From: Heteronotia binoei | Lineage: Eukaryota | Assembly: GCF_032191835.1 (NCBI RefSeq) | Contig: NC_083239.1 | Coordinates: 16,306,001-16,370,000, forward strand | Direction: 5' to 3' | Length of the DNA stretch: 64,000 nt | Part shown: positions 9,462 to 64,000 of the stretch, piece after piece | How the letters are laid out: each line of letters begins with the position of its first letter | Position numbering within the stretch: the stretch's first letter is position 1 | Notes under the pieces: generated by a model | Seen by the model: the letters and a program-made list of their open reading frames with translations, nothing else | What the model was told of the DNA's origin: nothing | The model's database searches: none | Program-made: the position numbers and the translations under genes

Positions 9462-12357
9462 CTAGCTGATGTAGTCATTGAGGTAGGCTGGCTTGCGATG
9501 CTCTCTGTTGGACCGCCTGAGCCCCGGAGGGGGTGGTGGAGCGGATGCAGTTGCAGCGGCGGTGAGTGGAGGGGCTGCTACAGTATCACTCTCAGTCAGC
9601 AGTTCCCGGGCCTCTGTGACCGCCGGCTCCACCTGAAGGGCGGGGCTCTGGGTCCCTGCCTCTGCTGTGGTGGTTGGGGAAGGAGTGGAGGTGGCGGTCT
9701 GGTTGTCAGAACTGTAATCCTCGACTTCTACCTAGGGGCTCTCGTGGGACCTCAGCTGGTCGATGTGCCTCCTTATGGTGGTCCCCCCCTCTGTTGTAAC
9801 CTCGTACATTATGGACCCCAGCACCCTGGCAACCCTTGCCAGAATCCAAGTGCCCCCCCAAGTTCTTAGCCATAACCCGGTCCTCTGTATCTAGCCCCCG
9901 AGGTGCCCAGATCGATTCTGGAACCTCCTGCAGGTCGAGGGCTCTGTCTGGGTGCAATCGGTCTAGTAGGGTGGCTCCCTGGCAGCCCATGAGGTGTTTG
10001 GCAGGGCTGCGGCCCATGGCTGAGGAGGGGATACTGTGCTGTGATAGTAAGAATTCTGCAATGTGGCCCTCCCAGTCCCCCTGGATGATGCAGCGGAGCG
10101 ATTCTTTAGTCGTCGGCACCACCCTTTTGGCCTGGCTGTTGGTGGCCGCGTGGAAGGGGGCTAACCTGATATGCCTAAAGGGGTTGCGGGCGCAGAAGTC
10201 CTGGAATTCTCCCAACATGAAGGCCTTCTTGTTATCCGAGACCAGCATGTCCGGGAGGCTATGCGTGGCGCACACCCGGCGGAGGCCGCCAATGGTGGCC
10301 TGGTGGATGCCACCGGGAGCACCTCCAGCCATTTCGAGTATGAGTCCACAATTAAGAAAAACGTTTGTCCCTGGAAGGACCCCGCAAAGTCCAGGTGCAA
10401 CCAGGACCAGGGTTTTCCTGTGGATTCTCAGTGGTGCACCGGAGCCCGGAGAGGTGCCAGCCGGGTCTCCTGGCAGGGCTGGCATCGAGCAACCCAAGAC
10501 TCGATCACATCAGCCATCCCGGGCCACCATACATAACTGCGGGCGAGTGCCTTCATGTGCACGATCCTTGGGTGCAGCGCCGTGAGGACTTGGTGTCTCA
10601 GAACCGGGGGCACCACCACCCTGTTCCCCCATTGCAAACACCCCTTATGGAGAGAGAGCTCGTCCCTGAGGGACGCGAATGCCCCAAACTCCGGTCCCAC
10701 CTGGCCCGTGGGGCATCCCCTCCATACCCAGTTCAGAACTCGGGAAAGTATTTTGTCCTTGGCCGAGCAGTGTGCAATGGGTGGTCCGGGAGGGACTCTA
10801 GAAGCAGGATCTAGTGTGCTGGGGCTGAATCCGGATCTTCGGACGACAGTAGCAGGAGGCTGAGAGCGTCCACGTGGCCCATGGCTTTCCCCGGCCTATA
10901 CTAAAGACCATACTGGTACCCTGCCAAGAAAATGGACCACTGTAGTACCCTGAGTGACAAGATCTGGGGCGTTTGTCGGTCAGGGGCAAAGAGGCCAAGT
11001 AAGGGCTTGTGGTCTGTATGCTGGTGAAGGACTGGCCATATAAGTAATCATGGAATTTTTTTACTCCTGCCATGATTGCCAGGCCCTTCTTGTCTATTTG
11101 CACGTAGTTGTGCTCCAGTTTCTGCAATGTTTTGGAGTAATAGGCCACCGGGACCTCCCTGACATCTGGCAACACATGGGCCAGGATGGCACCCACCCCA
11201 TAGGGGGAGGCGTCGCAGGCCAAAACAACGGGCAGCCTCTCATCGAAGGGTGCAAGCTGTTGGATGTCAGGAGGTCTTTAATGGCCTGGAAGGCGGCGGC
11301 TTGCCGGCGGCCCCAAACCCACAGAGCCCTTTTGTCTAAGAGCCTATGCAAGGGTTTTGCTACTGCCACCTTGTGGGGGAGGAAGGAATGGTAAAAGGCA
11401 TGGTGAGGACACCGCGGAATGATTGCAATTCGGCTTTGTTAGTGGGAGCTGGCGCATCGCAAATGGCTTTGATTTTGTCCTTGGATGGGTGGATCCCATT
11501 CACATCCACCATGTACCCCAGAAAGTCTATTGTAGGGACCCTCAGCAGACATTTTTCCCTCTTTACCTTGAGCCCTGCCTCACTGAAACGCTGTAGTACA
11601 GTGCGGAAGCAACTGGCGAATTCCTCTTCCGTTGCTGCAGTGATCAGCACATCGTCAAAGAATGGCTGGACTCCGGGAATCCCTTTTAAGAGAGAATCCA
11701 TTAAGCTCTGAAAAATTCCCGGAGCCACGCTGACCCTGAACTGGAGGCACTTTACCCGGAAAGTGCCCCGATGTGTGACTATGGTTTGGGCCTCGGCCGT
11801 GGCGGCGTCCACCGGCAATTGCTGGTATGCTTGGGCCAGATTCAGCTTCCAAAAAAATTTGGCACCTGCAAGGGATGCTAACACATGGCTGACCACCAGG
11901 ACCGGGTAGGCGTGGTCCTGCAGCACTTTATTGATCATGCATTTGTAGTCTGCACAGATGTGGATGCTCCTATTTGGCTTGATTGGGCTTTCCCATCGTG
12001 TGTTGGCGACCGGCTCCAGGACCCCTTGTGCCACTAGGCGGTCTAGCTCCTCCTCTATCTTGGGTTTCAAGGCAAAGAGTACCCGCCGGGCCTTTAGACG
12101 TATGGACGGCACGTTGGGGTTTATTTGTAACAACATGGGGGAACCTGTGTATGTTCCTAGTGTCCCATCGAAAACTGCCGGGAACTCTCCAGATGTCCTC
12201 AAAATCCATGCTGGCGGAGGCATGATGGATTCCCTCTACTCGGATCCCCAAGGGTGCAAACCAAGCCCAGCCCAACAGGCTACTCAGGTCCCCTTGTGCC
12301 ACCAGCAAGGGAAAGTCTCTCAAAAATTTCCCGTATTGCACCTTGACTACCCCTCCT
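9462..12357 (-). pseudogene. Gypsy element 2 pol (protease end, RT, RNase H, integrase), frameshifted; gag and 5' LTR missing
   Basis: RT ICADYK..DHAYP..KLNLAQAYQQL..PFFDDVLI..FLGY; RNase H ACDASPYGVGAIL..VAYYSKTL..YVQIDK; integrase H..H..MKALARSYVWWPGM..C..C, LDFAG..FLIVDSYSKWLEV, LVSDN..FHAATN. Split over several frames. Confidence 0.95.
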
Positions 12358-27711: not shown

Positions 27712-28275
27712 ATAGCCCAGGCTAGCCCAATCTTGTCAGATATCAGAAGCTTAAGCAGGATCAGCTAGGGCTGCCAAGTCCTTACCTCTTGCTGGTGGGG
27801 TGGGAGGGAGCCTTCTAAACGGAGAGCAGTGGCATCGTCAACGCAGTGATGTCGTGCAGAACTGATGTAATCACATTGGGGGTGTCACATGAGGGCATTC
27901 TGGTTTGAGGGCAAAACTGTATGGTAAAATAGCCCTCAAACCATAGAATTTTGCCCTCAAACCAGAGCATCCCTGTGTGACGTTCTCCAGTGTGATGATG
28001 TCACTTCCTCCTGATGTCGAGTCAGTGATGCCACTGTTTGGGGATGAGGTTTCCCTGGCTGGCAGGTGGTGGAGAGAAGCCCCCAAAAGTGGACTTATGG
28101 ACTGGGAACCCTAGGGTCAGCCCTGGTTAATATTTGGAAGGAAGACCACCAAGGAAGTCCAGGGTTGCAATGCAGAGACAGGTAGTGGCAAACTACCTCT
28201 GAATTGAATGTCTCTTGCCTTGAAAACCTTATGGAGTCACCATGTCAGCTGTGGCTTACAGCAGAACAAAAAAAA
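27712..28275 (+). mobile_element. 5S-derived SINE split by a MITE
   Basis: Head GCCCAATCTTGTCAGATATCAGAAGCTTAAGCAGG (27725-27759) resumes at 28114 with GGGTCAGCCCTGGTTAATATTTGGAAGGAAGACC. Confidence 0.8.
27766..28113. mobile_element. hAT MITE with internal palindrome
   Basis: TIR TAGGGCTGCCAAGTCC/GGACTGGGAACCCTA, 8-bp TSD GGATCAGC/GGGTCAGC, internal inverted repeat TCTGGTTTGAGGGCAAAA...TTTTGCCCTCAAACCAGA. Confidence 0.85.
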
Positions 28276-40089: not shown

Positions 40090-41635
40090 CATACCATACC
40101 ATACCATACCATACCATACCAAACCTTTAATGGCATAATAGATTCAGATAAAAATACACAGAATATAAAAATTTAAACATTGGAGATAAAATCAAAATAA
40201 AACCGAGCTTACAGATACATTCAAACATGCTCAGAATTAAATTTAAGGATGTCAGCCAGAAATTTTGCCACAGCCTCACTAACCACCCCCTCAGTATCAC
40301 TCAATAAATAATAACAGGGTGGCAGAATAGACAAATCTGGAGAAAAAGAAAGCTTGCCAAATAAATCTTTACGGAGGTTATGGTAAAAAGAACAATCAAG
40401 CAATATATGCTGGATTGAGTCAGGGGTATTCGCTCCACAGGAGCAAAGTCTGTCGGCTAAAGGGACTCGCTGATATCTCCCTTGTAAAACTTTGGAGGGA
40501 AACGCGTTTAGTCTGGCCAACATAAATGCCCTGCGATGACTTGGAGTGGTTAGGTCTGATAGATAATTGGGCATTTTGCCACAAAAAGCATAAAGACCTA
40601 AGGAAGCTGGAGAGCAAGTATAAGGGAGAGTTGGCCGTAATTTCGTTTCCTCCAATTCCCACAGTCTCAGTTTAATACATCTGAAGATATATGACTCTTC
40701 AGAGGTAGAAAAATCATCTACCTCTAACCCCAATTGATTGAGTTTAGACAGAAGCACTGCTGTCCAGGACGAAATATATGGGTCTCTTTTCATACAATCA
40801 AGAAGGCTGTTGGGATCTGTTCTAAAATGAATTTTGAGCCAGAATTTAAACACTGCAATCCAGGCTTTTGTCTCCACCAAAGACTGACCCACTTCAGAGC
40901 AGAGAGCAAAGTAGGACACACATTTTGGCAAACCAAGAATTTGTCTAAAGAATGAGGCTTGAATGCCCTCCACTTTCCTGGTAAAAGCTGAGATCCATAT
41001 AGGGATACCATAGAGGATTTGGGCAAGCGTTTTGGCTTTGAATACTTTAATAGCTGCTGGAACTAATTGGTTGCCCCTTGCAAAGAAAAACTGTTTAATT
41101 TGAGCAGCTGAACACTTAGCCAAGTTGATGGTGTTGTTACGATGTGAAACCCAGCTTAACTTGTGGTTAAAAGTGATCCCCAAGTATTTAAAATTTTTTG
41201 TTTGCTCGATTGTTGAATTGCCAATAAACCATCTCTGTGGGCCCCAGCAATTTGAAAAGACAACTACTTTAGATTTGGTATAATTGATAGTAAGTGAATT
41301 ACAATTACAGTAGTCATAAAAGGCGTTCAAATACCTTTGCAGGCCCACTCTTGTACAAGAGAGGATGGTAGTGTCATCGGCATAAAGTAATAAGGGGACC
41401 GCTCGGCCTGCAAGTTTAGGCGGATGACCATTGATAGGGGTCAAAAATTGTGCCAGGTCAGTTAAAAATAAATTAAAAAGATGTGGGGCCAGCACACAAC
41501 CTTGTTTTACCCCCTTTAACACTGGGATTTTACTAGTCAAGTCACCGCTAGAAGAAAATTTCACTTGGCAAAAGGTATTAGAATGAAGTTTCCTCAAGAG
41601 AAACAGCAAACGAGGGTCCATTCCCAGGTAACCAA
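40090..41635 (-). mobile_element. 5'-truncated non-LTR retrotransposon, probably RTE-X clade, with an intact ORF2 C-terminal part, nested in the hAT
   Basis: Uninterrupted ORF 40221-41635: GVKQGCVLAPHLFNLF, LLYADD, FKYLG, ILYGIPIW, C-terminal CSCG..HILLDC. The 3' end ATGCCATTAAAGG is followed by a (TGGTA)n tail. TSD GCCCCAAAC at 40081-40089 / 41636-41644. Confidence 0.88.
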
Positions 41636-42305
41636 GCCCCAAACAACACAAGAGAAGCGGTGGACCGCACCTAGCTCCACATCATTCTGTATCTGACACA
41701 AAGCAAGAAGCATTTAGACTTAACTTGAGTGATCGATGTTGGCTGGTCTAGGCTCTTTTGCGTTACCCAGGGTGCACCACGAGGAGGCGAGCCAGAGTTG
41801 CACCCCAAATGAGGAAGATCACTGGGAGGGCCTCAAATTGTGTGAGAGGAAGGCAACCATTCCTTCTCTTTCAGCTCAGCAGCAACACACCAGTTATCAC
41901 TGTCCCATTAGCGGGACCTCAGCATTGGTATGGCTGCTGGCTGCCTGTCATCATCAATGGCACCTTCCTCTTTCCTCCTCCTGCCCCTGAAAAAAAAAAA
42001 CTGGGTTATCCTGGCTGGGCCTGTGGGTGCTGTCGGTTACAGTTGGGGGCTGCAATGGCCCTTTCTGTATTATTAGGCATGTGTGGATGGGGGACTGGGA
42101 AAATTTGGATTGCTTTGCAGATTTTAAACCAGCATTCACTTTTGATTTGGGGAGGGATGAGGGGTGGGGGATGCACTGCCAATCAATTTGTGAGTGAGTT
42201 TTTGAGCTGTCTTTGGACTCTAGTCTATTTTTAGTGGAGGAGTGTTTTACACCCACCTTCCAAGCACGGGCCAAGAGAGGATGCAGGCACAAGTAGGTGC
42301 TCACT

Positions 42306-45050
42306 TCATTCACTCTCAAACTCTACGTTCGAGGAGCCGAACAGAGGCAAGTTGACCTTCAGGAAGACCAACTGCTCAACTGTCCAAGGTTGCAGGCGAT
42401 TGCGATGTGGGCAGACAATGTCGCCCATATGCGAAAAGACGTGCTCGCTCTGCACGCTTGTCTGTGGGCATGAGAGCAACGCCTTGGCCATGGAGGAGAG
42501 GGCTGGCCAGACCTCCTCCTTCATGACCCAGTAGTCCAAAGGAAACGTTTCCTGCGGCTCGAGGGGCTCCAAAAGATAGTCCCTCACCATCGCAGCACCT
42601 GTCTTTGCTCTTGGTTCCCTACCCACTCCTAGAGGGGCCAACGACCAGCCCGATGAGTGTCATCTCAGGACTCTTTGTGGCATGAGTCTGGTGGGAAACA
42701 CTGCCTAGGAGGTTGGGGATGAACAACAGCAGTGGAAGTGGCAGATGAGCTGCTTCCACCCCTCTCCTCCTCACCTACCAGCACTGGGCCTGCCCTGACT
42801 CTGGAATGCTCGACCTTCTGGGAGAGCTCGTCTCGCCAGTGATTGAGCTCGTTGGCCCGCTCGGCGACTGTGCCCTTAAGGCATGGGTCTAACATGGTCG
42901 CCATCATGTTGACCTGATCCTGGGTGAAAGTCTGAAAGTGGGCCTCAAGCCCTTCCTGCAGCCTAACAACCAGGGCATGCACAAGTGGAAGAACGTCTGC
43001 ATGGCCTTGAGCTGGCACTAGAAATGAGGCCAGGTCCTCACGCACCATCTGGACCATGGGGACGACCAGTGTGATGCTCGCCGTGTCAGACGAGAGCATT
43101 TCTCTGTGGGTCTTGAAGGGCTGAAGAACCTCCACAGTCTGAGAAATGACCACACAATCCTCTTGGGTGAGACGGTTCTCATCCCGAAAGACCCTCGTCT
43201 CAGAGACAAAGGCATCCAGGGCTGCTCTCTGTTCCACCATGAGCTCCAGCATGGCACAGGTGGAGTTCCAGTGTGTGCTGACGTCACCGATCAGGTGGTG
43301 CCCTGGCACGCCTGTCAGTGTCTGTTTCTCACGCAGCCGATATGAGTCCGTATTGCTGCGTGAGAAGTGAGCCGTAATGTGCCGACACTTCTGGAGCAGA
43401 AGTCGGTACTCATGGGTCGCGGCTAGATACCGACGATCCTGGCTTTTCGTCTGGCCCAATGCGTCCTTAACCACGAGGTGGAGAAGGAGGGCCACGCAAG
43501 GAAGGCGTTTTAGGCCCTGACGCTGGACAGCCGCCTTGATGTTGGAGCCACCATCAGTCACCACGAAGCCCATGGTGACGTCCCCGCTGCCTACCCAGCC
43601 CTCTAACTGCCATGAGAGGATGGCTCTGAGAGTGTCCGCCGTGTGCGACATGTCGACTGCTTCGGCGTGCAGAAAGGCCCAGCGATAGCTGGCCTGGCAA
43701 CCCTGACCCTGCCTGCTGCTACTGCTGCCACCCCCACACTGCACTGCCCCCAGCTCTCTGGGTTGCCACCAATGCGCAGTCAGGGAGAGATACCCCTTGA
43801 ACACATGTTGGGAGCTCCAGATATCTGAGGTGAAATGAACAGTCCCCCCGGCAGCACGGCACAAATGCTCCTTCACAGATCTGGTCGCCCTGAAAACAGC
43901 TGGCACAATCGTCCTGCTAATGGTGGTTCTCACAGGAACTTTGTACCAGGGCACCAGGTACTCGAGCAACCCTAGCTCCCCAGGATTCTCAATCACTGAA
44001 AATGGAAGCCCATGGGTGATCGACCTGGCAAGGTTCCAGGCGATCACCCTCCTGCCATATCTGATTCCCCCTCCTAGCACACAGGTGCGTCCCCCACCAA
44101 ACATCTCAGGCAGAGATGCCTGGTGTCCCTGTACTCCCACGGAACGCTCCTGGAGAGCGGAGGTAGTCGCGATGGGACGGACCTCCTGGCTGGGTGGTGT
44201 TGGCCGCTTGGGCACCACAGCACCAGCCTGCTTCTCCCCCTTAAGAAGCCCTGAAAACACCCTTAAGGGTGGTGCTTCTGCAGGTGATTCCGCATCTTCC
44301 CTGGAGTCAGGTGGGCAGGGTCCTGCCCACGACTGATCCAGGCCCTGCTCAGCTGGCACTGCACATAGCGTGGATCCTCCATAAGTTGGAAATGCTTCCA
44401 GACTTCGGAGGTGAACGGATGCCCAAACTGACTGGCAGCTTGGGTGTCCTGAGACACCTCCTTTGAGGTGCTCGGGGCAGACATATCGTGTGTCGGGGTG
44501 GCAGGAGGGGCTAGCCGCTGGGGGGAAGTGGGCAGAGATGGAGGCACCTCGTGTGTCTCCATCTCTTCCCCCTCCATTCCATGCGGCCTCCACTCCTGGT
44601 CACCCCCTGAAGGACTGCTGGTGCCTGAAGAAACCGAAGAAGGGGGCTGGTCCTCCTCAACCTGCTTCTCCTCCAGCTCCTGCACGACACTCTGCACCCT
44701 CCTTGGGGTGATCATTTTGGACAGAAAACTGTCCCCAAAGCTCATCTCCAAGGAAGGCTGCTCTTGCTGCCCCTCTTCCGGCTGCTGAGGCCAAGTGACA
44801 TCAGCTGGAGGAGAGACTGCCCGAGCAGCAGACCCCTGCTCAGTGCCAGTATCTACCCTGCTCAGTGCCAGTATCCAAGGCGGGCCTTCTTCATCGCACT
44901 CTGGCCAGACGTCGGAGTGCTGGAAGGCGGCTGTGGAGTGGCCCCACGCACAGGTGGGGGGGAGACCTGGGTCCTCCCCCTTCCCTCCACCCCTCTAGTC
45001 TTCTCCTTGGCCTTGCCCCCAAGGCCCCTCTTCTGCTGCCTGTCACTCAT
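42306..45050 (-). pseudogene. hAT transposase pseudogene (BED finger, DDE core, hATC dimerization domain)
   Basis: SEVWKHF..YVQCQL..MRNHLQKHH (BED), VHFTSDIWS..YLSLTAHW, VTDGGSN, CVALLLHL (CxxH lost), THWNST, PLDYW..WPALS..LLSCPQTSVQSEHVFS (hATC). Several frameshifts. Confidence 0.93.
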
Positions 45051-52429: not shown

Positions 52430-52899
52430 GATTAGCTCCAGCACCTAGAATCAAAAAATATCTGGGGACTTTGGGGTGGAGTCAGAAGCAAGGGAACAAG
52501 CATGATCTAACTCCAACGGGAGTTCTGGCAATCACATTTTAAGGGACCGCACACCTTCTAAATTTGGAAATAGTAGATAGGAGCACCTTCTTCTGGGGCT
52601 CATAGAACTGGACCCCCTGGTCCAATTTTTTTTGAAATTTACATGGTGTTTTGAGAAGAGACACTAGATGTTATGCTGAAAATGTGGTGCATCTACCTAA
52701 AAAAACCAGCTCCCCTAGAGTCCCAGATACCCACAGATCAGTTCTCCATTATACCTTATGATGGGAATCTGTCTCCATAGGGAATGGAGTGCCCAGCAGA
52801 CATTTCCCCCCTCCTACCCACTTTCTGATGACCCTGAAATGGGGAGAGGGCTTCCAAACTGGGAGATCTCCTGCCCTCATCTGGGGCTTGGCAACGTTA
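52430..52899 (+). mobile_element. Old copy of the 54808-55326 hAT MITE family
   Basis: Colinear with 54830-55326; ends TTGGCAACGTTA. Confidence 0.75.
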
Positions 52900-54807
52900 C
52901 CAGCACCCCTTGGCAGCCATTTTGTGGTGGTGCCTACTCCTCAAAATTATAAAAGTGTCCACAGAATGACAAGATTGGGGACCTTTGCTCTACATACTGT
53001 ATAACAGGAGTCTTATTTCCTGAGAAGAAACATTTCAGAAAATGGGAAGTTTATCAGGATACAGTGCATATTCTTGCTATGGCCCTTCTATATTACCTTT
53101 GCTTTTGCAGAGCTGCAGTAACTGCAGCCTATGGACATCTGATAGCAAAGCACAACAAGGGCTGTTTGTGTAAAAGTCAAGTACCATTTTGCAGAACGGT
53201 GACAATAAAGCGGCATTACTTAGAGGAATCCAGGGAGATTTTTCGTGAAGTTGCCCCTTAAATGTTAAAGGCTGTTAAAAAGGAGTTGACGTTCAATAAA
53301 GCAGAAATGAATTTGCAGCCTAATGTTTGAATTCCCTCATGCCAAAGCCAAATGTCATGGAATTCTGGGGTTGTTTAGAAAGATTGCATTTGAGAAGCTC
53401 AGCTTATTTTGTTCCAGCTAGGCATGGGCAGACTTCTTTCTTTCGGTGGAAGGTTAAAAAGAGAGGTGACAAGGGGCTGCCTCCATCTAGAATCATCCTC
53501 ATTCCTTCATTCAGTTTTAGTGGAGAATGCAGACCACAGTATTGACAACATTTTATCTGAGTATTTCCCCCATTGGCTTCCTTTCTCTTGGTCAGATGTG
53601 ATTTGTGGTGATTCCCCCCCACCCTATACAATGGCAGCAGGCTGCTTGGTGTGCACAGTGGTACTGAGGGTTTCGCAATGCTGCTATCTGTTCTTCTGTA
53701 CTGTATTTTCAGGGCTAAATTACGATTCATTCTTCCTGCCGCTGTTTCTGTTTTTCATCTTTAGTCATTAATACTTTTTTTTTTAACTTTCTGCAATTAA
53801 TCCTTTGTTATCCATTCTTATTCTTAAGTGGGTGCTATTCTCTGCCCTTAAGCAAGTTATTAACCCTTCCATGAGGGGGAAATGATGATACTACCTTAGC
53901 ACAAGGGTCAAAGTGACCCCATATTACAGCAAAAAATAATGGAAGCTTGATAGTGCTCTCAATCATGGCATTCGCTACTAAGAAAAAAATCAGGCCTTAA
54001 GAATGACTTTTTTAGCAATGCAGGACAAAGAGTGAAATTTGGAACTGGGGTCAAAAATCTCCCTCATTGAATGCTGCTGTCTGTCTTAATGCTGCAGATG
54101 GCTGTACCATTTCACCTTTGGCCTAACGGGTCATTTGACATTCAAGGAAGTGATGCCTTTTCTTTGTTTTGGATCAGTGAAGCTGTGAACAATTCGTAAT
54201 ATAGCTCTGTATGGTCTCTTTTGATTGGTTGTGGCTCTCCAAGAACTCATGGGGAGAGAATTCTTTCCCACCTCTGCTTCCTGAGCTCTTTCATCTATCC
54301 AATCAAGATGGCTTGATAGAATATTAGATGCTCCTACCGAGTCATAGTTAACATAGTGTGAACCAATTTGGGAAGAACCACTTAAGCAAATGAGCTGATA
54401 TAGACACAGCATCATTGGTAGTTTAGGGGTGTTACTGTGTATGGATGCTAAACTTAAATAATTCATTTGATGGTGTTAGAAAGTGCTGCCAAGTTGCAGC
54501 TGATTTATGGTAACCCTGTAGGGTTTTCAAGGCAACAAGCAATCAGATGTGGTTTGCTATTACCGTCTCTGTGTAGCAGCCTTGAACATGGACCCCTGTC
54601 ATGATCCTAGGTCTAGTGAGGCCTCCAGGGAAGCCTATATTAAATTAGTTACAAGGCCCATATTTCTCAGGATCCCTTCTGTCCCTCTGATTGGGTGGGC
54701 AGCAGTTTTGGAGGGAAAACTTGCCCAGACGGCTGGGACCTGGGAGAAAAGCATAAAAAGGCTAGCTACAGAAAAGAGAAGTGTTTTCAGTAAAGGCTGG
54801 GCTGGAG

Positions 54808-55326
54808 TAGGGTTGCCAAGTCCAATTCAAGAAATATCTGGGGACTTTGGGGATGAAGCCAGGAGACTTTGGGGGTGGAGCCAGGAGACATTGGGGGCGG
54901 AGCCAGGAGCAAGGGTGTGACAAGCATAATTGAACTCCAAGGGAGTTCTGGTCATCACATTGAAAGGGACAGCACACCTTTTTAAAGCCTTCCTTCAATA
55001 GGAAATAATGAAGGATAGGGGCACTTTCTTTGGAAGCTCATAGAATGGGATCCTCTTGTCCAATCGTTTTGAAACTTGGGAAGTATTTTGGGGAGGGGCA
55101 CTAGATGCTATACTGAAAATTTGGTGCCTCTACCTCAAAAAACAGCCCCCCAGAGTCCCTGATATCTGCGGATCAATTCCCCATTATTCCCTAAAACTGC
55201 CGGAGATCTAGAGCTGTGGGGGCTGGGGGGGTGGGACTTCCCCCTGCCGGCTAGCTGGCTGGGGGGCGGGGGGACACCTGTAAAACCAGGAGATCTCCCG
55301 CTGGGACCTGGGGATTGGGAAGCCTA
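54808..55326 (+). mobile_element. Non-autonomous hAT (Blackjack-like TIR)
   Basis: TIR TAGGGTTGCCAA/TTGGGAAGCCTA and a perfect 8-bp TSD GGCTGGAG (54800-54807 / 55327-55334). Confidence 0.92.
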
Positions 55327-55604
55327 GGCTGGAGAGAGGGGTGGCCAGACCGTCCCGGTCTCCCGGGACATTCCCGGATCTGGCCACCCAATCCCGGATC
55401 CCGGGCTGCCTATACCGGGACCATTAAAGGTCCCGGTTTAGGCAGCCCAGGAGCCGGTGGGCCGCGGGCGCGGGCGGGGAAGGCGGGGAGTGAGGGAGGG
55501 AGCGTCCCTGCGCCTGCGCAGGGCCCCTGCGCACGCGCAGGGACGCTCCCACCCTCACTCCCCGCCTTCCCCGCCCGCGCGCGGGGCCCGGCGGCAGTGG
55601 TGGA

Positions 55605-56298
55605 GGCCTCTCCGTGGCCTCCGCTGGTCGCTGGAAGCCCTCCAGAGACTCTGGAGGGCCTCCAGCGACCAGCGGAGGCCGCGGAGAGGCCGCGGGGCAC
55701 CCGGCGCTGGTCCCGGAAGGCCTTCCAGAGCCTCTGGAAGGCCTTCGGGGACCAGCGCCGGCCAGCGAAGGCTTCCCCGCGGCCTCCGCTGGTCCCTGGA
55801 GGCCCTCCAGAGTCTCTGGAGGGCCTCCAGGGACCAGCGGAGGCCGCGGGGAAGCCGCGGGGCACCCGGCGCTGGTCCCGGAAGGCCTTCCAGAGCCTCT
55901 GGAAGGCCTTCCGGGACCAGCGCCGGCCAGCGAAGGCTTCCCCGCGGCCTCCGCTGGTCCCTGGAGGCCCTCCAGAGTCTCTGGAGGGCCTCCAGGGACC
56001 AGCGGAGGCCGCGGGGAAGCCGCGGGGCACCCGGCGCTGGTCCCGGAAGGCCTTCCAGAGGCTCTGGAAGGCCTTCCGGGACCAGCGCCGGCCAGCGAAG
56101 GCTTCCCCGCGGCCTCCGCTGGTCCCTGGAGGCCCTCCAGAGTCTCTGGAGGGCCTCCAGGGACCAGCGGAGGCCGCGGGGAAGCCGCGGGGCACCCGGC
56201 GCTGGTCCCGGAAGGCCTTCCAGAGCCTCTGGAAGGCCTTCGGGGACCAGCGCCGGCCAGCGAAGGCTTCCCCGCGGCCTCCGCTGGTCCCTGGAGGC
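55605..56298. repeat. 165-bp tandem repeat (about 4.2 copies), each unit = 85-bp palindrome + 61-bp palindrome
   Basis: GCTTCCCCGCGG recurs at 55771, 55936, 56101 and 56266. Arms checked base by base. Confidence 0.97.
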
Positions 56299-56825
56299 AC
56301 GCTGAAGCAGCCTGTCGGTCACTTCCAGGTTCCTGTCCTGCATCTTGACCGGTGTTATTAGTGACAGGCTGCTTCGGCGTGCCGCTGCGCCGGCCCCCTT
56401 GGTCCCACAACGATGGGACCGATGCCACAGGGACGGGCTCGAAACACTCTATAACCCCTCAAAAGAACAGCAGTCTAGCTCGCTTCCCCCGAGCCCTGCC
56501 GCCATAAGCCTCAAGGGGGCTCATTTTGCGGCATCTCCCGGCGGGAGGGTGGCACCCGCACGGGACACATATCAAATGAAAGAGGGGGCGCAGGGCTATC
56601 AGAAACAGTCGGCGGAGGGAGTCGGGAGACCACCCCACTGGGGGATCCACACCCCGAAAGTGATGAAGGTGGCGCAGATAGAGCCAACAGAGCCAACAGG
56701 ACAAAATAAATAGGCTGCATTATGCAGCACAGTTGAGAAAGTGCCTTATCCCATATACTGATGAAGTATATACAGGATTTGAGAACAAAATTGTTTCCGG
56801 CGGTGATATTTGGGGGATTTTTGGG

Positions 56826-56981
56826 GACGTCACAGGAAGTGCTGTGAAGTCACTTCCTGTTTCCGGCAGGTGACGCGGGGGAAATGATGTCACAGGAAGT
56901 GATGCCACTTCCTGTTTCCGGTGGTGGCATGACATCACCGGAAGTGACGTCACCGGAAGTGACGTCACTTCCTGTTTCCGG
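56826..56981. promoter_or_regulatory. Cluster of ETS (GGAAGTG) and CRE motifs, including two tandem CCGGAAGTGACGTCA
   Basis: Seven GGAAGTG cores. Exact ETS-CRE composites at 56938-56952 and 56953-56967. Function not shown. Confidence 0.45.
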
Positions 56982-57429
56982 CGGCGCGCGCGCTTCGAGC
57001 GCGCGCACCCCCCCCCCCCCCCCCAGTGTCCCTGGCTGGCCTTCAGACATTATGGTCACCTTGGAGGTTGCAGCTAGAAGTGATCCCTCACCCAAGGGGG
57101 TGGTGAGTCTGTAGAGGAAGGAAACCTTTAGTTCGTCATCTCAGGGCTATTATTTTCTTTGCATCACCTTTACTGTTTCTACCTTTCACTGTTGCACTAA
57201 TAATTAAAACTGAGTCATTTAGTTTTGAGCACCCACAATAAAATGATTGTTATACTGCCTGGGTCCTCACGTCTCTTTGGTCACGGATAGAAGGTGCTTT
57301 GTAAAGAAGGAAGACAGAGGTGGGTGGGTGGTCTGGGCCCTCCCACACAGACTCTTATCAGAGTGGTGGCAGCCAGTAGAAGCCCCTCTCCGGTCCCCTG
57401 CTGCGTGACAACTTTACACTTTCTTTACC

Positions 57430-57525
57430 ATTGGTGGTGTCCCATCCAAGTACTAACCAGTACTGTCTCCTTTATGAGATCTGTCAAGATCAGGCTGGTC
57501 TGCTCATCCAAATCAGGGTAAGAAT
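57430..57525 (-). mobile_element. 5S-derived SINE head
   Basis: TGTCCCATCCAAGTACTAACCAG...GAGATCTGTCAAGATCAGGCT, reverse complement of the 5S head. Confidence 0.65.
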
Positions 57526-63794: not shown

Positions 63795-64000
63795 CATGGC
63801 TGCTGGAAAGCACTGGAACCATATCAAGTCATAGCCAACGTATGGCAACCGCATAGGGTTTTCAGGGCAAGAGGTGAACAGAGGTGGTTTGCCGTGGCCT
63901 GCCTCCATGTAGCAACTGTAAACTTCTTTGCTGGTCTCCCATCCCAAGTACTCATCATTGCTGTCCCTGCTTAGCTTCTAAGATCTGTTGAGATCAGGCT
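63795..64000 (-). mobile_element. 5S-derived SINE
   Basis: GGTCTCCCATCCCAAGTACT...GCTTAGCTTCTAAGATCTGTTGAGATCAGGCT plus the family body. Confidence 0.75.

Follow-up and report, generated by a model that had tools for sequence, protein, structure and literature searches.

A tandem array of nested palindromes within a multi-copy block of GC-rich hairpins in a gecko genome

Among mobile elements, the closest described systems are the tandem-repeat MITEs and Helentron-associated elements, such as DTC84 and pearl of bivalves, or DINE-1 and HINE of insects and mites. In bivalves and insects, the palindrome in each repeat has been proposed to make the array especially prone to changing its length (PMC3879986, PMC4067079). 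Helitrons are recognized by TC at the 5' end, CTRR at the 3' end, a hairpin located roughly 11 bp before that end, and insertion between A and T (PMC4067079). As for palindromes themselves, template switching is an established process that turns imperfect palindromes into perfect ones (PMC7202029, PMC3820800, PMC7954356), and the palindromes at known fragile sites are several hundred base pairs long and AT-rich (PMC7999016).

We analyzed a 64,000-nt stretch of the genome of Heteronotia binoei (NC_083239.1, positions 16,306,001 to 16,370,000, forward strand), which we call the window; all of our coordinates are positions within it. A first-pass annotation of this DNA described an array of palindromes and considered it unusual for such an array to be maintained. 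We found that the array does not stand alone. It is a tandem segment inside an interspersed block that is multi-copy and young, with about 1% divergence outside of the array. Probably, the array is a variable internal minisatellite of a young, non-coding, GC- and CpG-rich interspersed gecko repeat of about 1.7 kb, which consists almost entirely of hairpin-forming palindromes. The repeat family is real, young, and uncharacterised, and it is not a new system.

Anatomy of the array

Tandem Repeats Finder reports an array at 55604-56298 with a period of 165, 4.2 copies, and 97% matches, and also a secondary period of 83 (74% matches). A repeat finder identified direct-repeat copies at 165-bp spacing as well as perfect inverted repeats within the array. 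Together with an inverted-repeat search, Tandem Repeats Finder thus confirmed that this is a tandem array whose 165-bp unit is made of two palindromes. As a head-to-tail array with a unit of 10-200 bp, it can be classified as a minisatellite (VNTR). The parts of the array, none of which is assigned to a strand, are:

55604-56298: tandem array of the 165-bp unit, in the order A1-B1, A2-B2, A3-B3, A4-B4, truncated A5 (from Tandem Repeats Finder and direct repeats)
55605-55691: palindrome A1, a diverged first copy with 2 arm mismatches and centre A
55701-55761 and 56196-56256: palindromes B1 and B4, which have the same single G.G arm mismatch and centre C
55770-55856: palindrome A2, with perfect 43-nt arms and centre T
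55866-55926: palindrome B2, with perfect 30-nt arms and centre C
55935-56021 and 56100-56186: palindromes A3 and A4, identical to A2, perfect, centre T
56031-56091: palindrome B3, perfect, centre G
Ending at 56298: A5, a fifth copy of A that is cut off after 34 nt

A register-by-register check shows that the unit comprises palindrome A (87 bp), whose 43-nt arms surround a single centre base, and palindrome B (61 bp), whose 30-nt arms likewise surround a single centre base. The linker that leads from A to B is 9 nt long, and the one from B to the next A is 8 nt long. The first-pass annotation had recognized that A is palindromic but made it too short (85 bp, with 42-bp arms), and it made each linker one nucleotide too long (10 nt and 9 nt). 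It placed and sized the four copies of B (61 bp, 30-bp arms) correctly, but it described all of them as perfect, and only B2 and B3 are. Its three copies of A are real but incomplete as a list, as they are accompanied by the diverged A1 and the cut A5.

The arms of A and B are similar to each other: 25/30 of the inner nucleotides are identical. Along with the period of 83, this bears out the proposal that A and B are homologous and that the unit is a higher-order dimer. Each arm also contains a smaller palindrome, as had been claimed; the one in A measures 7+1+7 nt, and the one in B measures 12 nt. A and B are diverged copies of one palindrome, and the unit is a dimer of them. The ancestral palindrome would already have had a small palindrome in each arm.

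The 61-87-bp palindromes are 75% G+C, and they are predicted to form very stable structures. The predicted DNA fold of one unit has an energy of -110.4 kcal/mol, versus -43.7 +/- 3.3 in 200 shuffles (z = -20.3), and the RNA fold has an energy of -179.5, versus -89.7 for shuffles (z = -18.4). So, the idea that either strand would fold into a row of hairpins agrees with the predictions. The idea that a pre-mRNA would form this comb and be edited gained no support from the raw RNA reads, whose depth is 0-1.5 on the array, versus 15-50 on the right part of the block described below.

The host block and its family

The array lies within a larger block that runs from 55340 to about 57024. This block is 1685 bp long and 68% G+C, with a ratio of observed to expected CpG of 0.73, as compared to 0.18-0.29 in the flanks. 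In its length and composition, it qualifies as a CpG island (>500 bp, G+C >55%, and CpG observed/expected >0.65). It is almost entirely hairpin-forming, it is non-coding, and it harbours the array. Besides the array, its features (again without an assigned strand) are:

55340-57024: multi-copy GC-rich hairpin block; the left limit is exact, and the right limit is within 56994-57033, which was masked in the alignment of reads and contigs
55340-55389: terminal hairpin H1, a 10-bp outer stem around small sub-hairpins, whose first base is the family boundary
55403-55448: hairpin H2 (from the fold and the sequence)
55453-55595: palindrome H3, 143 bp, with 71-nt arms that are 92% complementary and two central sub-hairpins with 8-bp stems
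56296-56383: hairpin H4, predicted from the fold, with arms of about 25 nt and a 38-nt loop, which begins at the array's cut end
Between H4 and the motif block: about 400 bp of unique sequence
56780-56985: block of repeated ETS and CRE motifs, arranged both palindromically and in tandem (Tandem Repeats Finder period 15)
56986-57006: hairpin of G+C only, with a 9-bp stem, near the right end of the block
57008-57024: run of 17 C at the right end of the block

For every large palindrome of the block, there is an alternative fold in which a stem bears two small arms. Around H4, one sequencing run (X7, described below) has a joint between opposite strands at 56303/56377. The arms of H2 resemble outward-facing hAT ends (a right-end-like 10-mer, 26 bp, and a left-end-like 10-mer), and we found no partner ends for them elsewhere near the block. 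Directly after the C run, at 57052-57113, there is an ATG in good context, followed by 19 codons and a GTGAGT site that resembles a splice donor. This stretch is probably due to chance, and the depth of RNA reads there is about 0.

The rest of the 64-kb window contains no other copies of the block or of the array. The window is repeat-rich and includes open reading frames for LINE reverse transcriptases, and there is no sign of a gene at the position of the array. LINE remnants are at 40221-41651, 42665-44593, and 11360-12223, all on the minus strand, with a reverse-transcriptase domain in two of the reading frames. A 642-amino-acid reading frame adjacent to these has no match in Pfam.

Parts of the sampled sequence were found in 18 sequencing runs from 7 studies. 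No run contained more than half of the sampled words, and 4 runs were aligned. X1 and X7 are DNA runs with two other organism labels, from different studies, and X2 is an RNA run. Contigs from these three runs extend over 55340-55517 and 56308-56892 and also include pieces of the array. In all three runs, contig depth is 0 across the unique right flank (57025-57125) and is far higher within the block, as expected if the block is multi-copy. In X1 as well as in X2, contigs begin at precisely 55340, which is the first base of H1. This is how the boundary of a repeat should appear in a de Bruijn assembly, and the left boundary of the family is sharp.

These data also show that the array is real. 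Contigs from the two DNA runs match 55645-55762, 55796-55888, and 55641-55744, across the linkers from A to B, with 4-8 differences. (These contigs show A followed by B; the junction from B to A is absent among them.) Contigs from other runs fit the diverged A1 variant. Because contigs from other runs match both, the array and the A1 variant are features of the family, rather than of just this one assembly. It could be argued that the array is an artefact of assembly, as GC-rich palindromic repeats are hard to sequence and the contigs cover the array only thinly and in fragments. But independent runs, with other organism labels and from other studies, contain contigs that match segments of the array across the linkers, and we are nearly certain that the array is genuine. 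The first-pass annotation had named two findings that would undermine it, an assembly artefact or a common repeat unit. The contigs that cross the linkers speak against an artefact, while the other is essentially what we found: a multi-copy family in independent DNA data.

Outside of the array, about 11 sites differ from the majority of the contigs and reads, or about 1% of sites. This low divergence, along with the CpG ratio of 0.73 (versus 0.21 in a neighbouring old MITE), implies that the family is young. (The CpG richness could alternatively reflect hypomethylation in the germline, which would hint at activity, rather than just youth.) Since the block is young and multi-copy, an account of long-term maintenance is not required.

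The family also has a short form. One contig from the X2 RNA library joins 55464 to 56478 and lacks 55465-56477, that is, the 143-bp palindrome, the array, and H4. Two other contigs from RNA libraries join 54705 to 57246 and 54728 to 57141, which skips 2.4-2.5 kb. The flanks match at only about 87%, so these contigs represent paralogous repeats and not an empty allele.

Six long open reading frames cross the array, and all six frames are open. This is an effect of composition, as 6.8% of palindrome-preserving shuffles are equally free of stop codons. Every match of these reading frames to Pfam was below the cut-off and appears to be noise, so we rejected a coding role. We also rejected a known RNA family: at the gathering thresholds of Rfam, there were no matches, and at E <= 1, there were generic matches to miRNA hairpins on both strands, with a best score of 77 bits (versus a threshold of 197). 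Overall, nothing that we found supports a function for the array, and it seems that no host function is needed or indicated.

Origin and spread of the block

Just upstream of the block is a MITE of the hAT type. The window contains these copies:

54808-55326: complete hAT MITE, 519 bp, with a perfect 8-bp duplication GGCTGGAG (54800-54807 = 55327-55334)
2552-1667, minus strand: second copy of the hAT MITE, flanked by a perfect 8-bp duplication TCCTAACC and enlarged by 383 bp of internal filler that includes CT/CA microsatellites
52470-52758: partial copy of the hAT MITE

Both full copies have the same 16-nt start and an imperfect inverse of it at the finish. This MITE is extremely abundant in the sequencing runs that we aligned. 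Allowing for the 8-bp duplication, only 5 bp separate the upstream copy from the left limit of the hairpin block. Because it has terminal ends and an 8-bp duplication of its own, this MITE is a separate insertion and not a shell of the block. For the same reason, we rejected the idea that the block is part of the upstream repeat.

At this locus, the block is not enclosed by transposon ends. Between its two ends, the best inverted match is 7 nt. A brute-force scan for outer inverted ends with an 8-bp duplication that enclose the block found only pairs at the level of chance, and target duplications of other lengths, with a left boundary at 55335-55345, were not found beyond chance either. We considered the 7-nt sequence GGGGTGG (55338-55344 and 57097-57103) as a target duplication and rejected it: it is at about the chance level, and it conflicts with the depth profile. 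So, the block has neither the 8-bp target-site duplication nor the short terminal inverted repeats of a hAT element. On a larger scale, two halves of a SINE-like repeat (54490-54592 and 57395-57500) bracket about 2.8 kb that contains the MITE and the hairpin block, and other copies of this SINE-like repeat are at 28123-28243 and 63841-64000. The two halves share the same ~25 nt of the SINE, at only ~65% identity. They could stem from a long duplication that is old, or else they are separate copies.

Near the right end of the block, at 56936-56968, the ETS<->CRE composite motif is matched twice, over 18 nt each time and with an overlap between the matches. In cellular promoters, the overlapping ETS<->CRE motif is bound by GABP-alpha and CREB (PMC3464117, PMC4555227). 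The terminal repeats of a contig from a B19-like parvovirus (L001, 5.6 kb) contain four occurrences of an 18-nt sequence from the motif block, and a local alignment of 56936-56968 to positions 256-289 of this contig has 31/33 nt identical. A 15-bp unit of ETS and CRE is tandemly repeated in both. When we used tblastn to compare proteins from B19-like parvoviruses to the window, we found nothing below E = 0.06. The array pattern and one pattern from the right end were absent from the viral contigs, and two scans of metagenome contigs gave no matches. The window contains no viral protein remnant and the DNA match is limited to a common ETS<->CRE motif, so we rejected a viral origin for the block and do not classify it as an endogenous parvovirus. 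The economical reading is that the likeness to parvoviruses reflects convergence on a host promoter motif. As these are promoter motifs, the block may do something at some loci. Insertions of a CpG-rich block with perfect ETS<->CRE motifs could seed promoters or CpG islands; if this were shown, it would matter for gene regulation in geckos.

How might the block have spread? It could be cargo or filler of a hAT cut-and-paste transposon and have no independent role. There is a complete hAT MITE at a distance of just 5 bp, and the MITE family does take up internal filler, as illustrated by the extra 383 bp in the second copy. But the nearby MITE is closed by its own duplication (54800-54807 = 55327-55334), with the block outside of it; the block is not surrounded by inverted ends that have an 8-bp duplication next to them, and its own ends are not inverted repeats of one another; the similarity between the MITE and the block is at the level of shuffled sequences; and the family's contigs stop at 55340, which is not a hAT end. 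We therefore view the hAT explanation as unlikely. Alternatively, the block might be a non-autonomous element that a Rep-type (HUH) enzyme moves or copies via DNA that is single-stranded or forms hairpins, much like Helitron or Helentron passengers or the terminal hairpins of parvoviruses, with palindromes that are selected as structures for recognition or priming. Such elements would lack inverted ends and target duplications, as the block does, and here the family boundary is the first base of a terminal hairpin, the opposite end also finishes in a hairpin, and each large palindrome has the alternative fold with two small arms. Also, the general layout of the block resembles that of Helentron-associated elements and of the tandem-repeat MITEs of insects and bivalves (PMC4067079, PMC3879986): central tandem repeats (the array), a simple run at one end (the 17 C), and a 3' palindrome (the hairpin at 56986-57006). 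Nevertheless, the diagnostic ends of those elements are missing. The TC...CTRR of Helitrons is absent at 55340 and at about 57024 in both orientations (the left end is GG after G), and so is their insertion between A and T. We did not find the marks of Helentrons and tandem-repeat MITEs, which are subterminal inverted repeats of ~13 bp and flanks that are T-rich or AA; instead, the block is flanked by G-rich sequence on the left and by the C run and AGTG on the right. The 31/33-nt match to a parvovirus terminal repeat might seem to favour a Rep-type enzyme, but convergence suffices to explain a standard cellular motif (PMC3464117, PMC4555227), no remnant of parvovirus NS1 or VP coding sequence is in the window, and the array pattern is missing from the collection of viral contigs. 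Finally, the two linkers (9 and 8 nt) are not reverse complements, which rules out a rolling-hairpin concatemer as a model for the array. Movement by a Rep-type enzyme is quite improbable in our view.

We considered two other proposals. If the array were transcribed, its long perfect hairpins might be processed to small RNAs or edited, so that this would be a hairpin-RNA locus. The predicted RNA hairpins are extremely stable, RNA libraries include parts of the block, and the array has weak matches to many models of miRNA precursors. But those matches fall far under the gathering scores and are on both strands, which would be the case for every perfect hairpin. The raw RNA depth per direction is 0-1.5 on the array, versus 7-32 on 56318-56923, and it does not differ between the two directions. 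(The low depth on the array is weak negative evidence, as palindromes are hard to sequence.) Furthermore, the asymmetries between arms are mostly of the complement type (G.G, C.C, A.A) and not of the G:U type. We think that a hairpin-RNA locus is highly improbable. We also see just a very slim chance that the block is a new kind of vertebrate mobile DNA, which lacks inverted ends and generates no target duplication, with hairpin ends, an ETS<->CRE promoter module of its own, and hairpin-primed fold-back copying. If this were true, the nested perfect palindromes and the flipping centres would be direct traces of replication and not side effects of repair. Our preferred explanation is still a young interspersed repeat with a variable minisatellite inside it.

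Mirrored changes and comparison with known systems

The copies of the palindromes differ from each other in a characteristic way. Between A1 and A2, there are 5 changes in the left arm, and 3/5 of these are matched, at the mirror position, by precisely the complementary change (P about 2.5e-5). Altogether, A1 and A2 differ by 3 mirrored pairs of substitutions, 2 unmirrored changes, and a flip of the centre. Between A and B, all of the arm differences (5/5) are mirrored. The centre bases are A, T, T, T across the copies of A and C, C, G, C across the copies of B, which are complements only. A contig from X1 has G at the centre of B1 (55731), where this window has C. If we consider the arm asymmetries and the centre changes together, 8/10 are to the complementary base (binomial P = 8e-5, with a background of 0.2). 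Arm mismatches at 55457-55591, 55715/55747, and 56210/56242 are mostly G.G, C.C, or A.A, with transitions in the minority.

The mirrored changes and the flipped centres suggest hairpin-templated copying of DNA and not selection on RNA. During DNA synthesis or repair, a strand would fold back on itself, and one arm would be copied from the other (quasi-palindrome template switching). This would either erase a new mutation or copy it onto the opposite arm, and it would invert the unpaired base at the centre. The number of units could shift by replication slippage or by unequal exchange. Because mirrored changes would equally be expected under selection for the hairpin, template switching is something that we infer. 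In a young family, the persistence of palindromes needs no special explanation.

The first-pass annotation also held that cruciform instability makes the array unusual. Our analysis does not support this argument for these palindromes: at 87 and 61 bp, and with G+C-rich centres, they are far shorter than the AT-rich palindromes of fragile sites. Strong fragility would therefore not be expected for G+C-rich palindromes of 61-87 bp.

The family is of modest value as a clean natural example of palindromes within palindromes, where a new mutation on one arm has its mirror image on the other and the centre base inverts. Its variants across the genome could be used to measure the rate and the direction of template-switch correction in the vertebrate germline.

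Of the known systems, hAT MITEs with filler are represented in the same window, where one copy of the MITE contains filler; the hairpin block differs in that it has no enclosing hAT ends or 8-bp duplication. AAV-type terminal repeats form T-shaped hairpins. Like the terminal repeats of the B19-like parvovirus contig, the block has long terminal palindromes with small inner palindromes, and tandem 15-bp units of ETS and CRE. Unlike a parvovirus, it is not accompanied by viral genes in the window, and its two ends differ from each other.

The block is more similar to the tandem-repeat MITEs and Helentron-associated elements, which are also short and non-coding, with a central array of repeats of ~150-170 bp, variants in a fixed order, a simple run at one end, and palindromes near the ends (PMC3879986, PMC4067079). 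It differs from them in that the entire unit is palindromic, in its lack of subterminal inverted repeats and of T or AA flanks, and in having a vertebrate host.

At the level of the palindromes, PATRRs and other fragile long palindromes are also spacer-less and capable of forming cruciforms (PMC7999016), but PATRRs are ~200 to ~595 bp and >90% A+T, while the palindromes here are 61-87 bp and 75% G+C. Quasi-palindrome hotspots, whose arms are made identical by copying from one arm to the other (PMC7202029, PMC3820800, PMC7954356), fit the mirrored substitutions and centre flips that we observed. Those hotspots are single experimental or genomic sites, whereas here the process is deduced from a repeat family and would act at two nested levels of palindromes.
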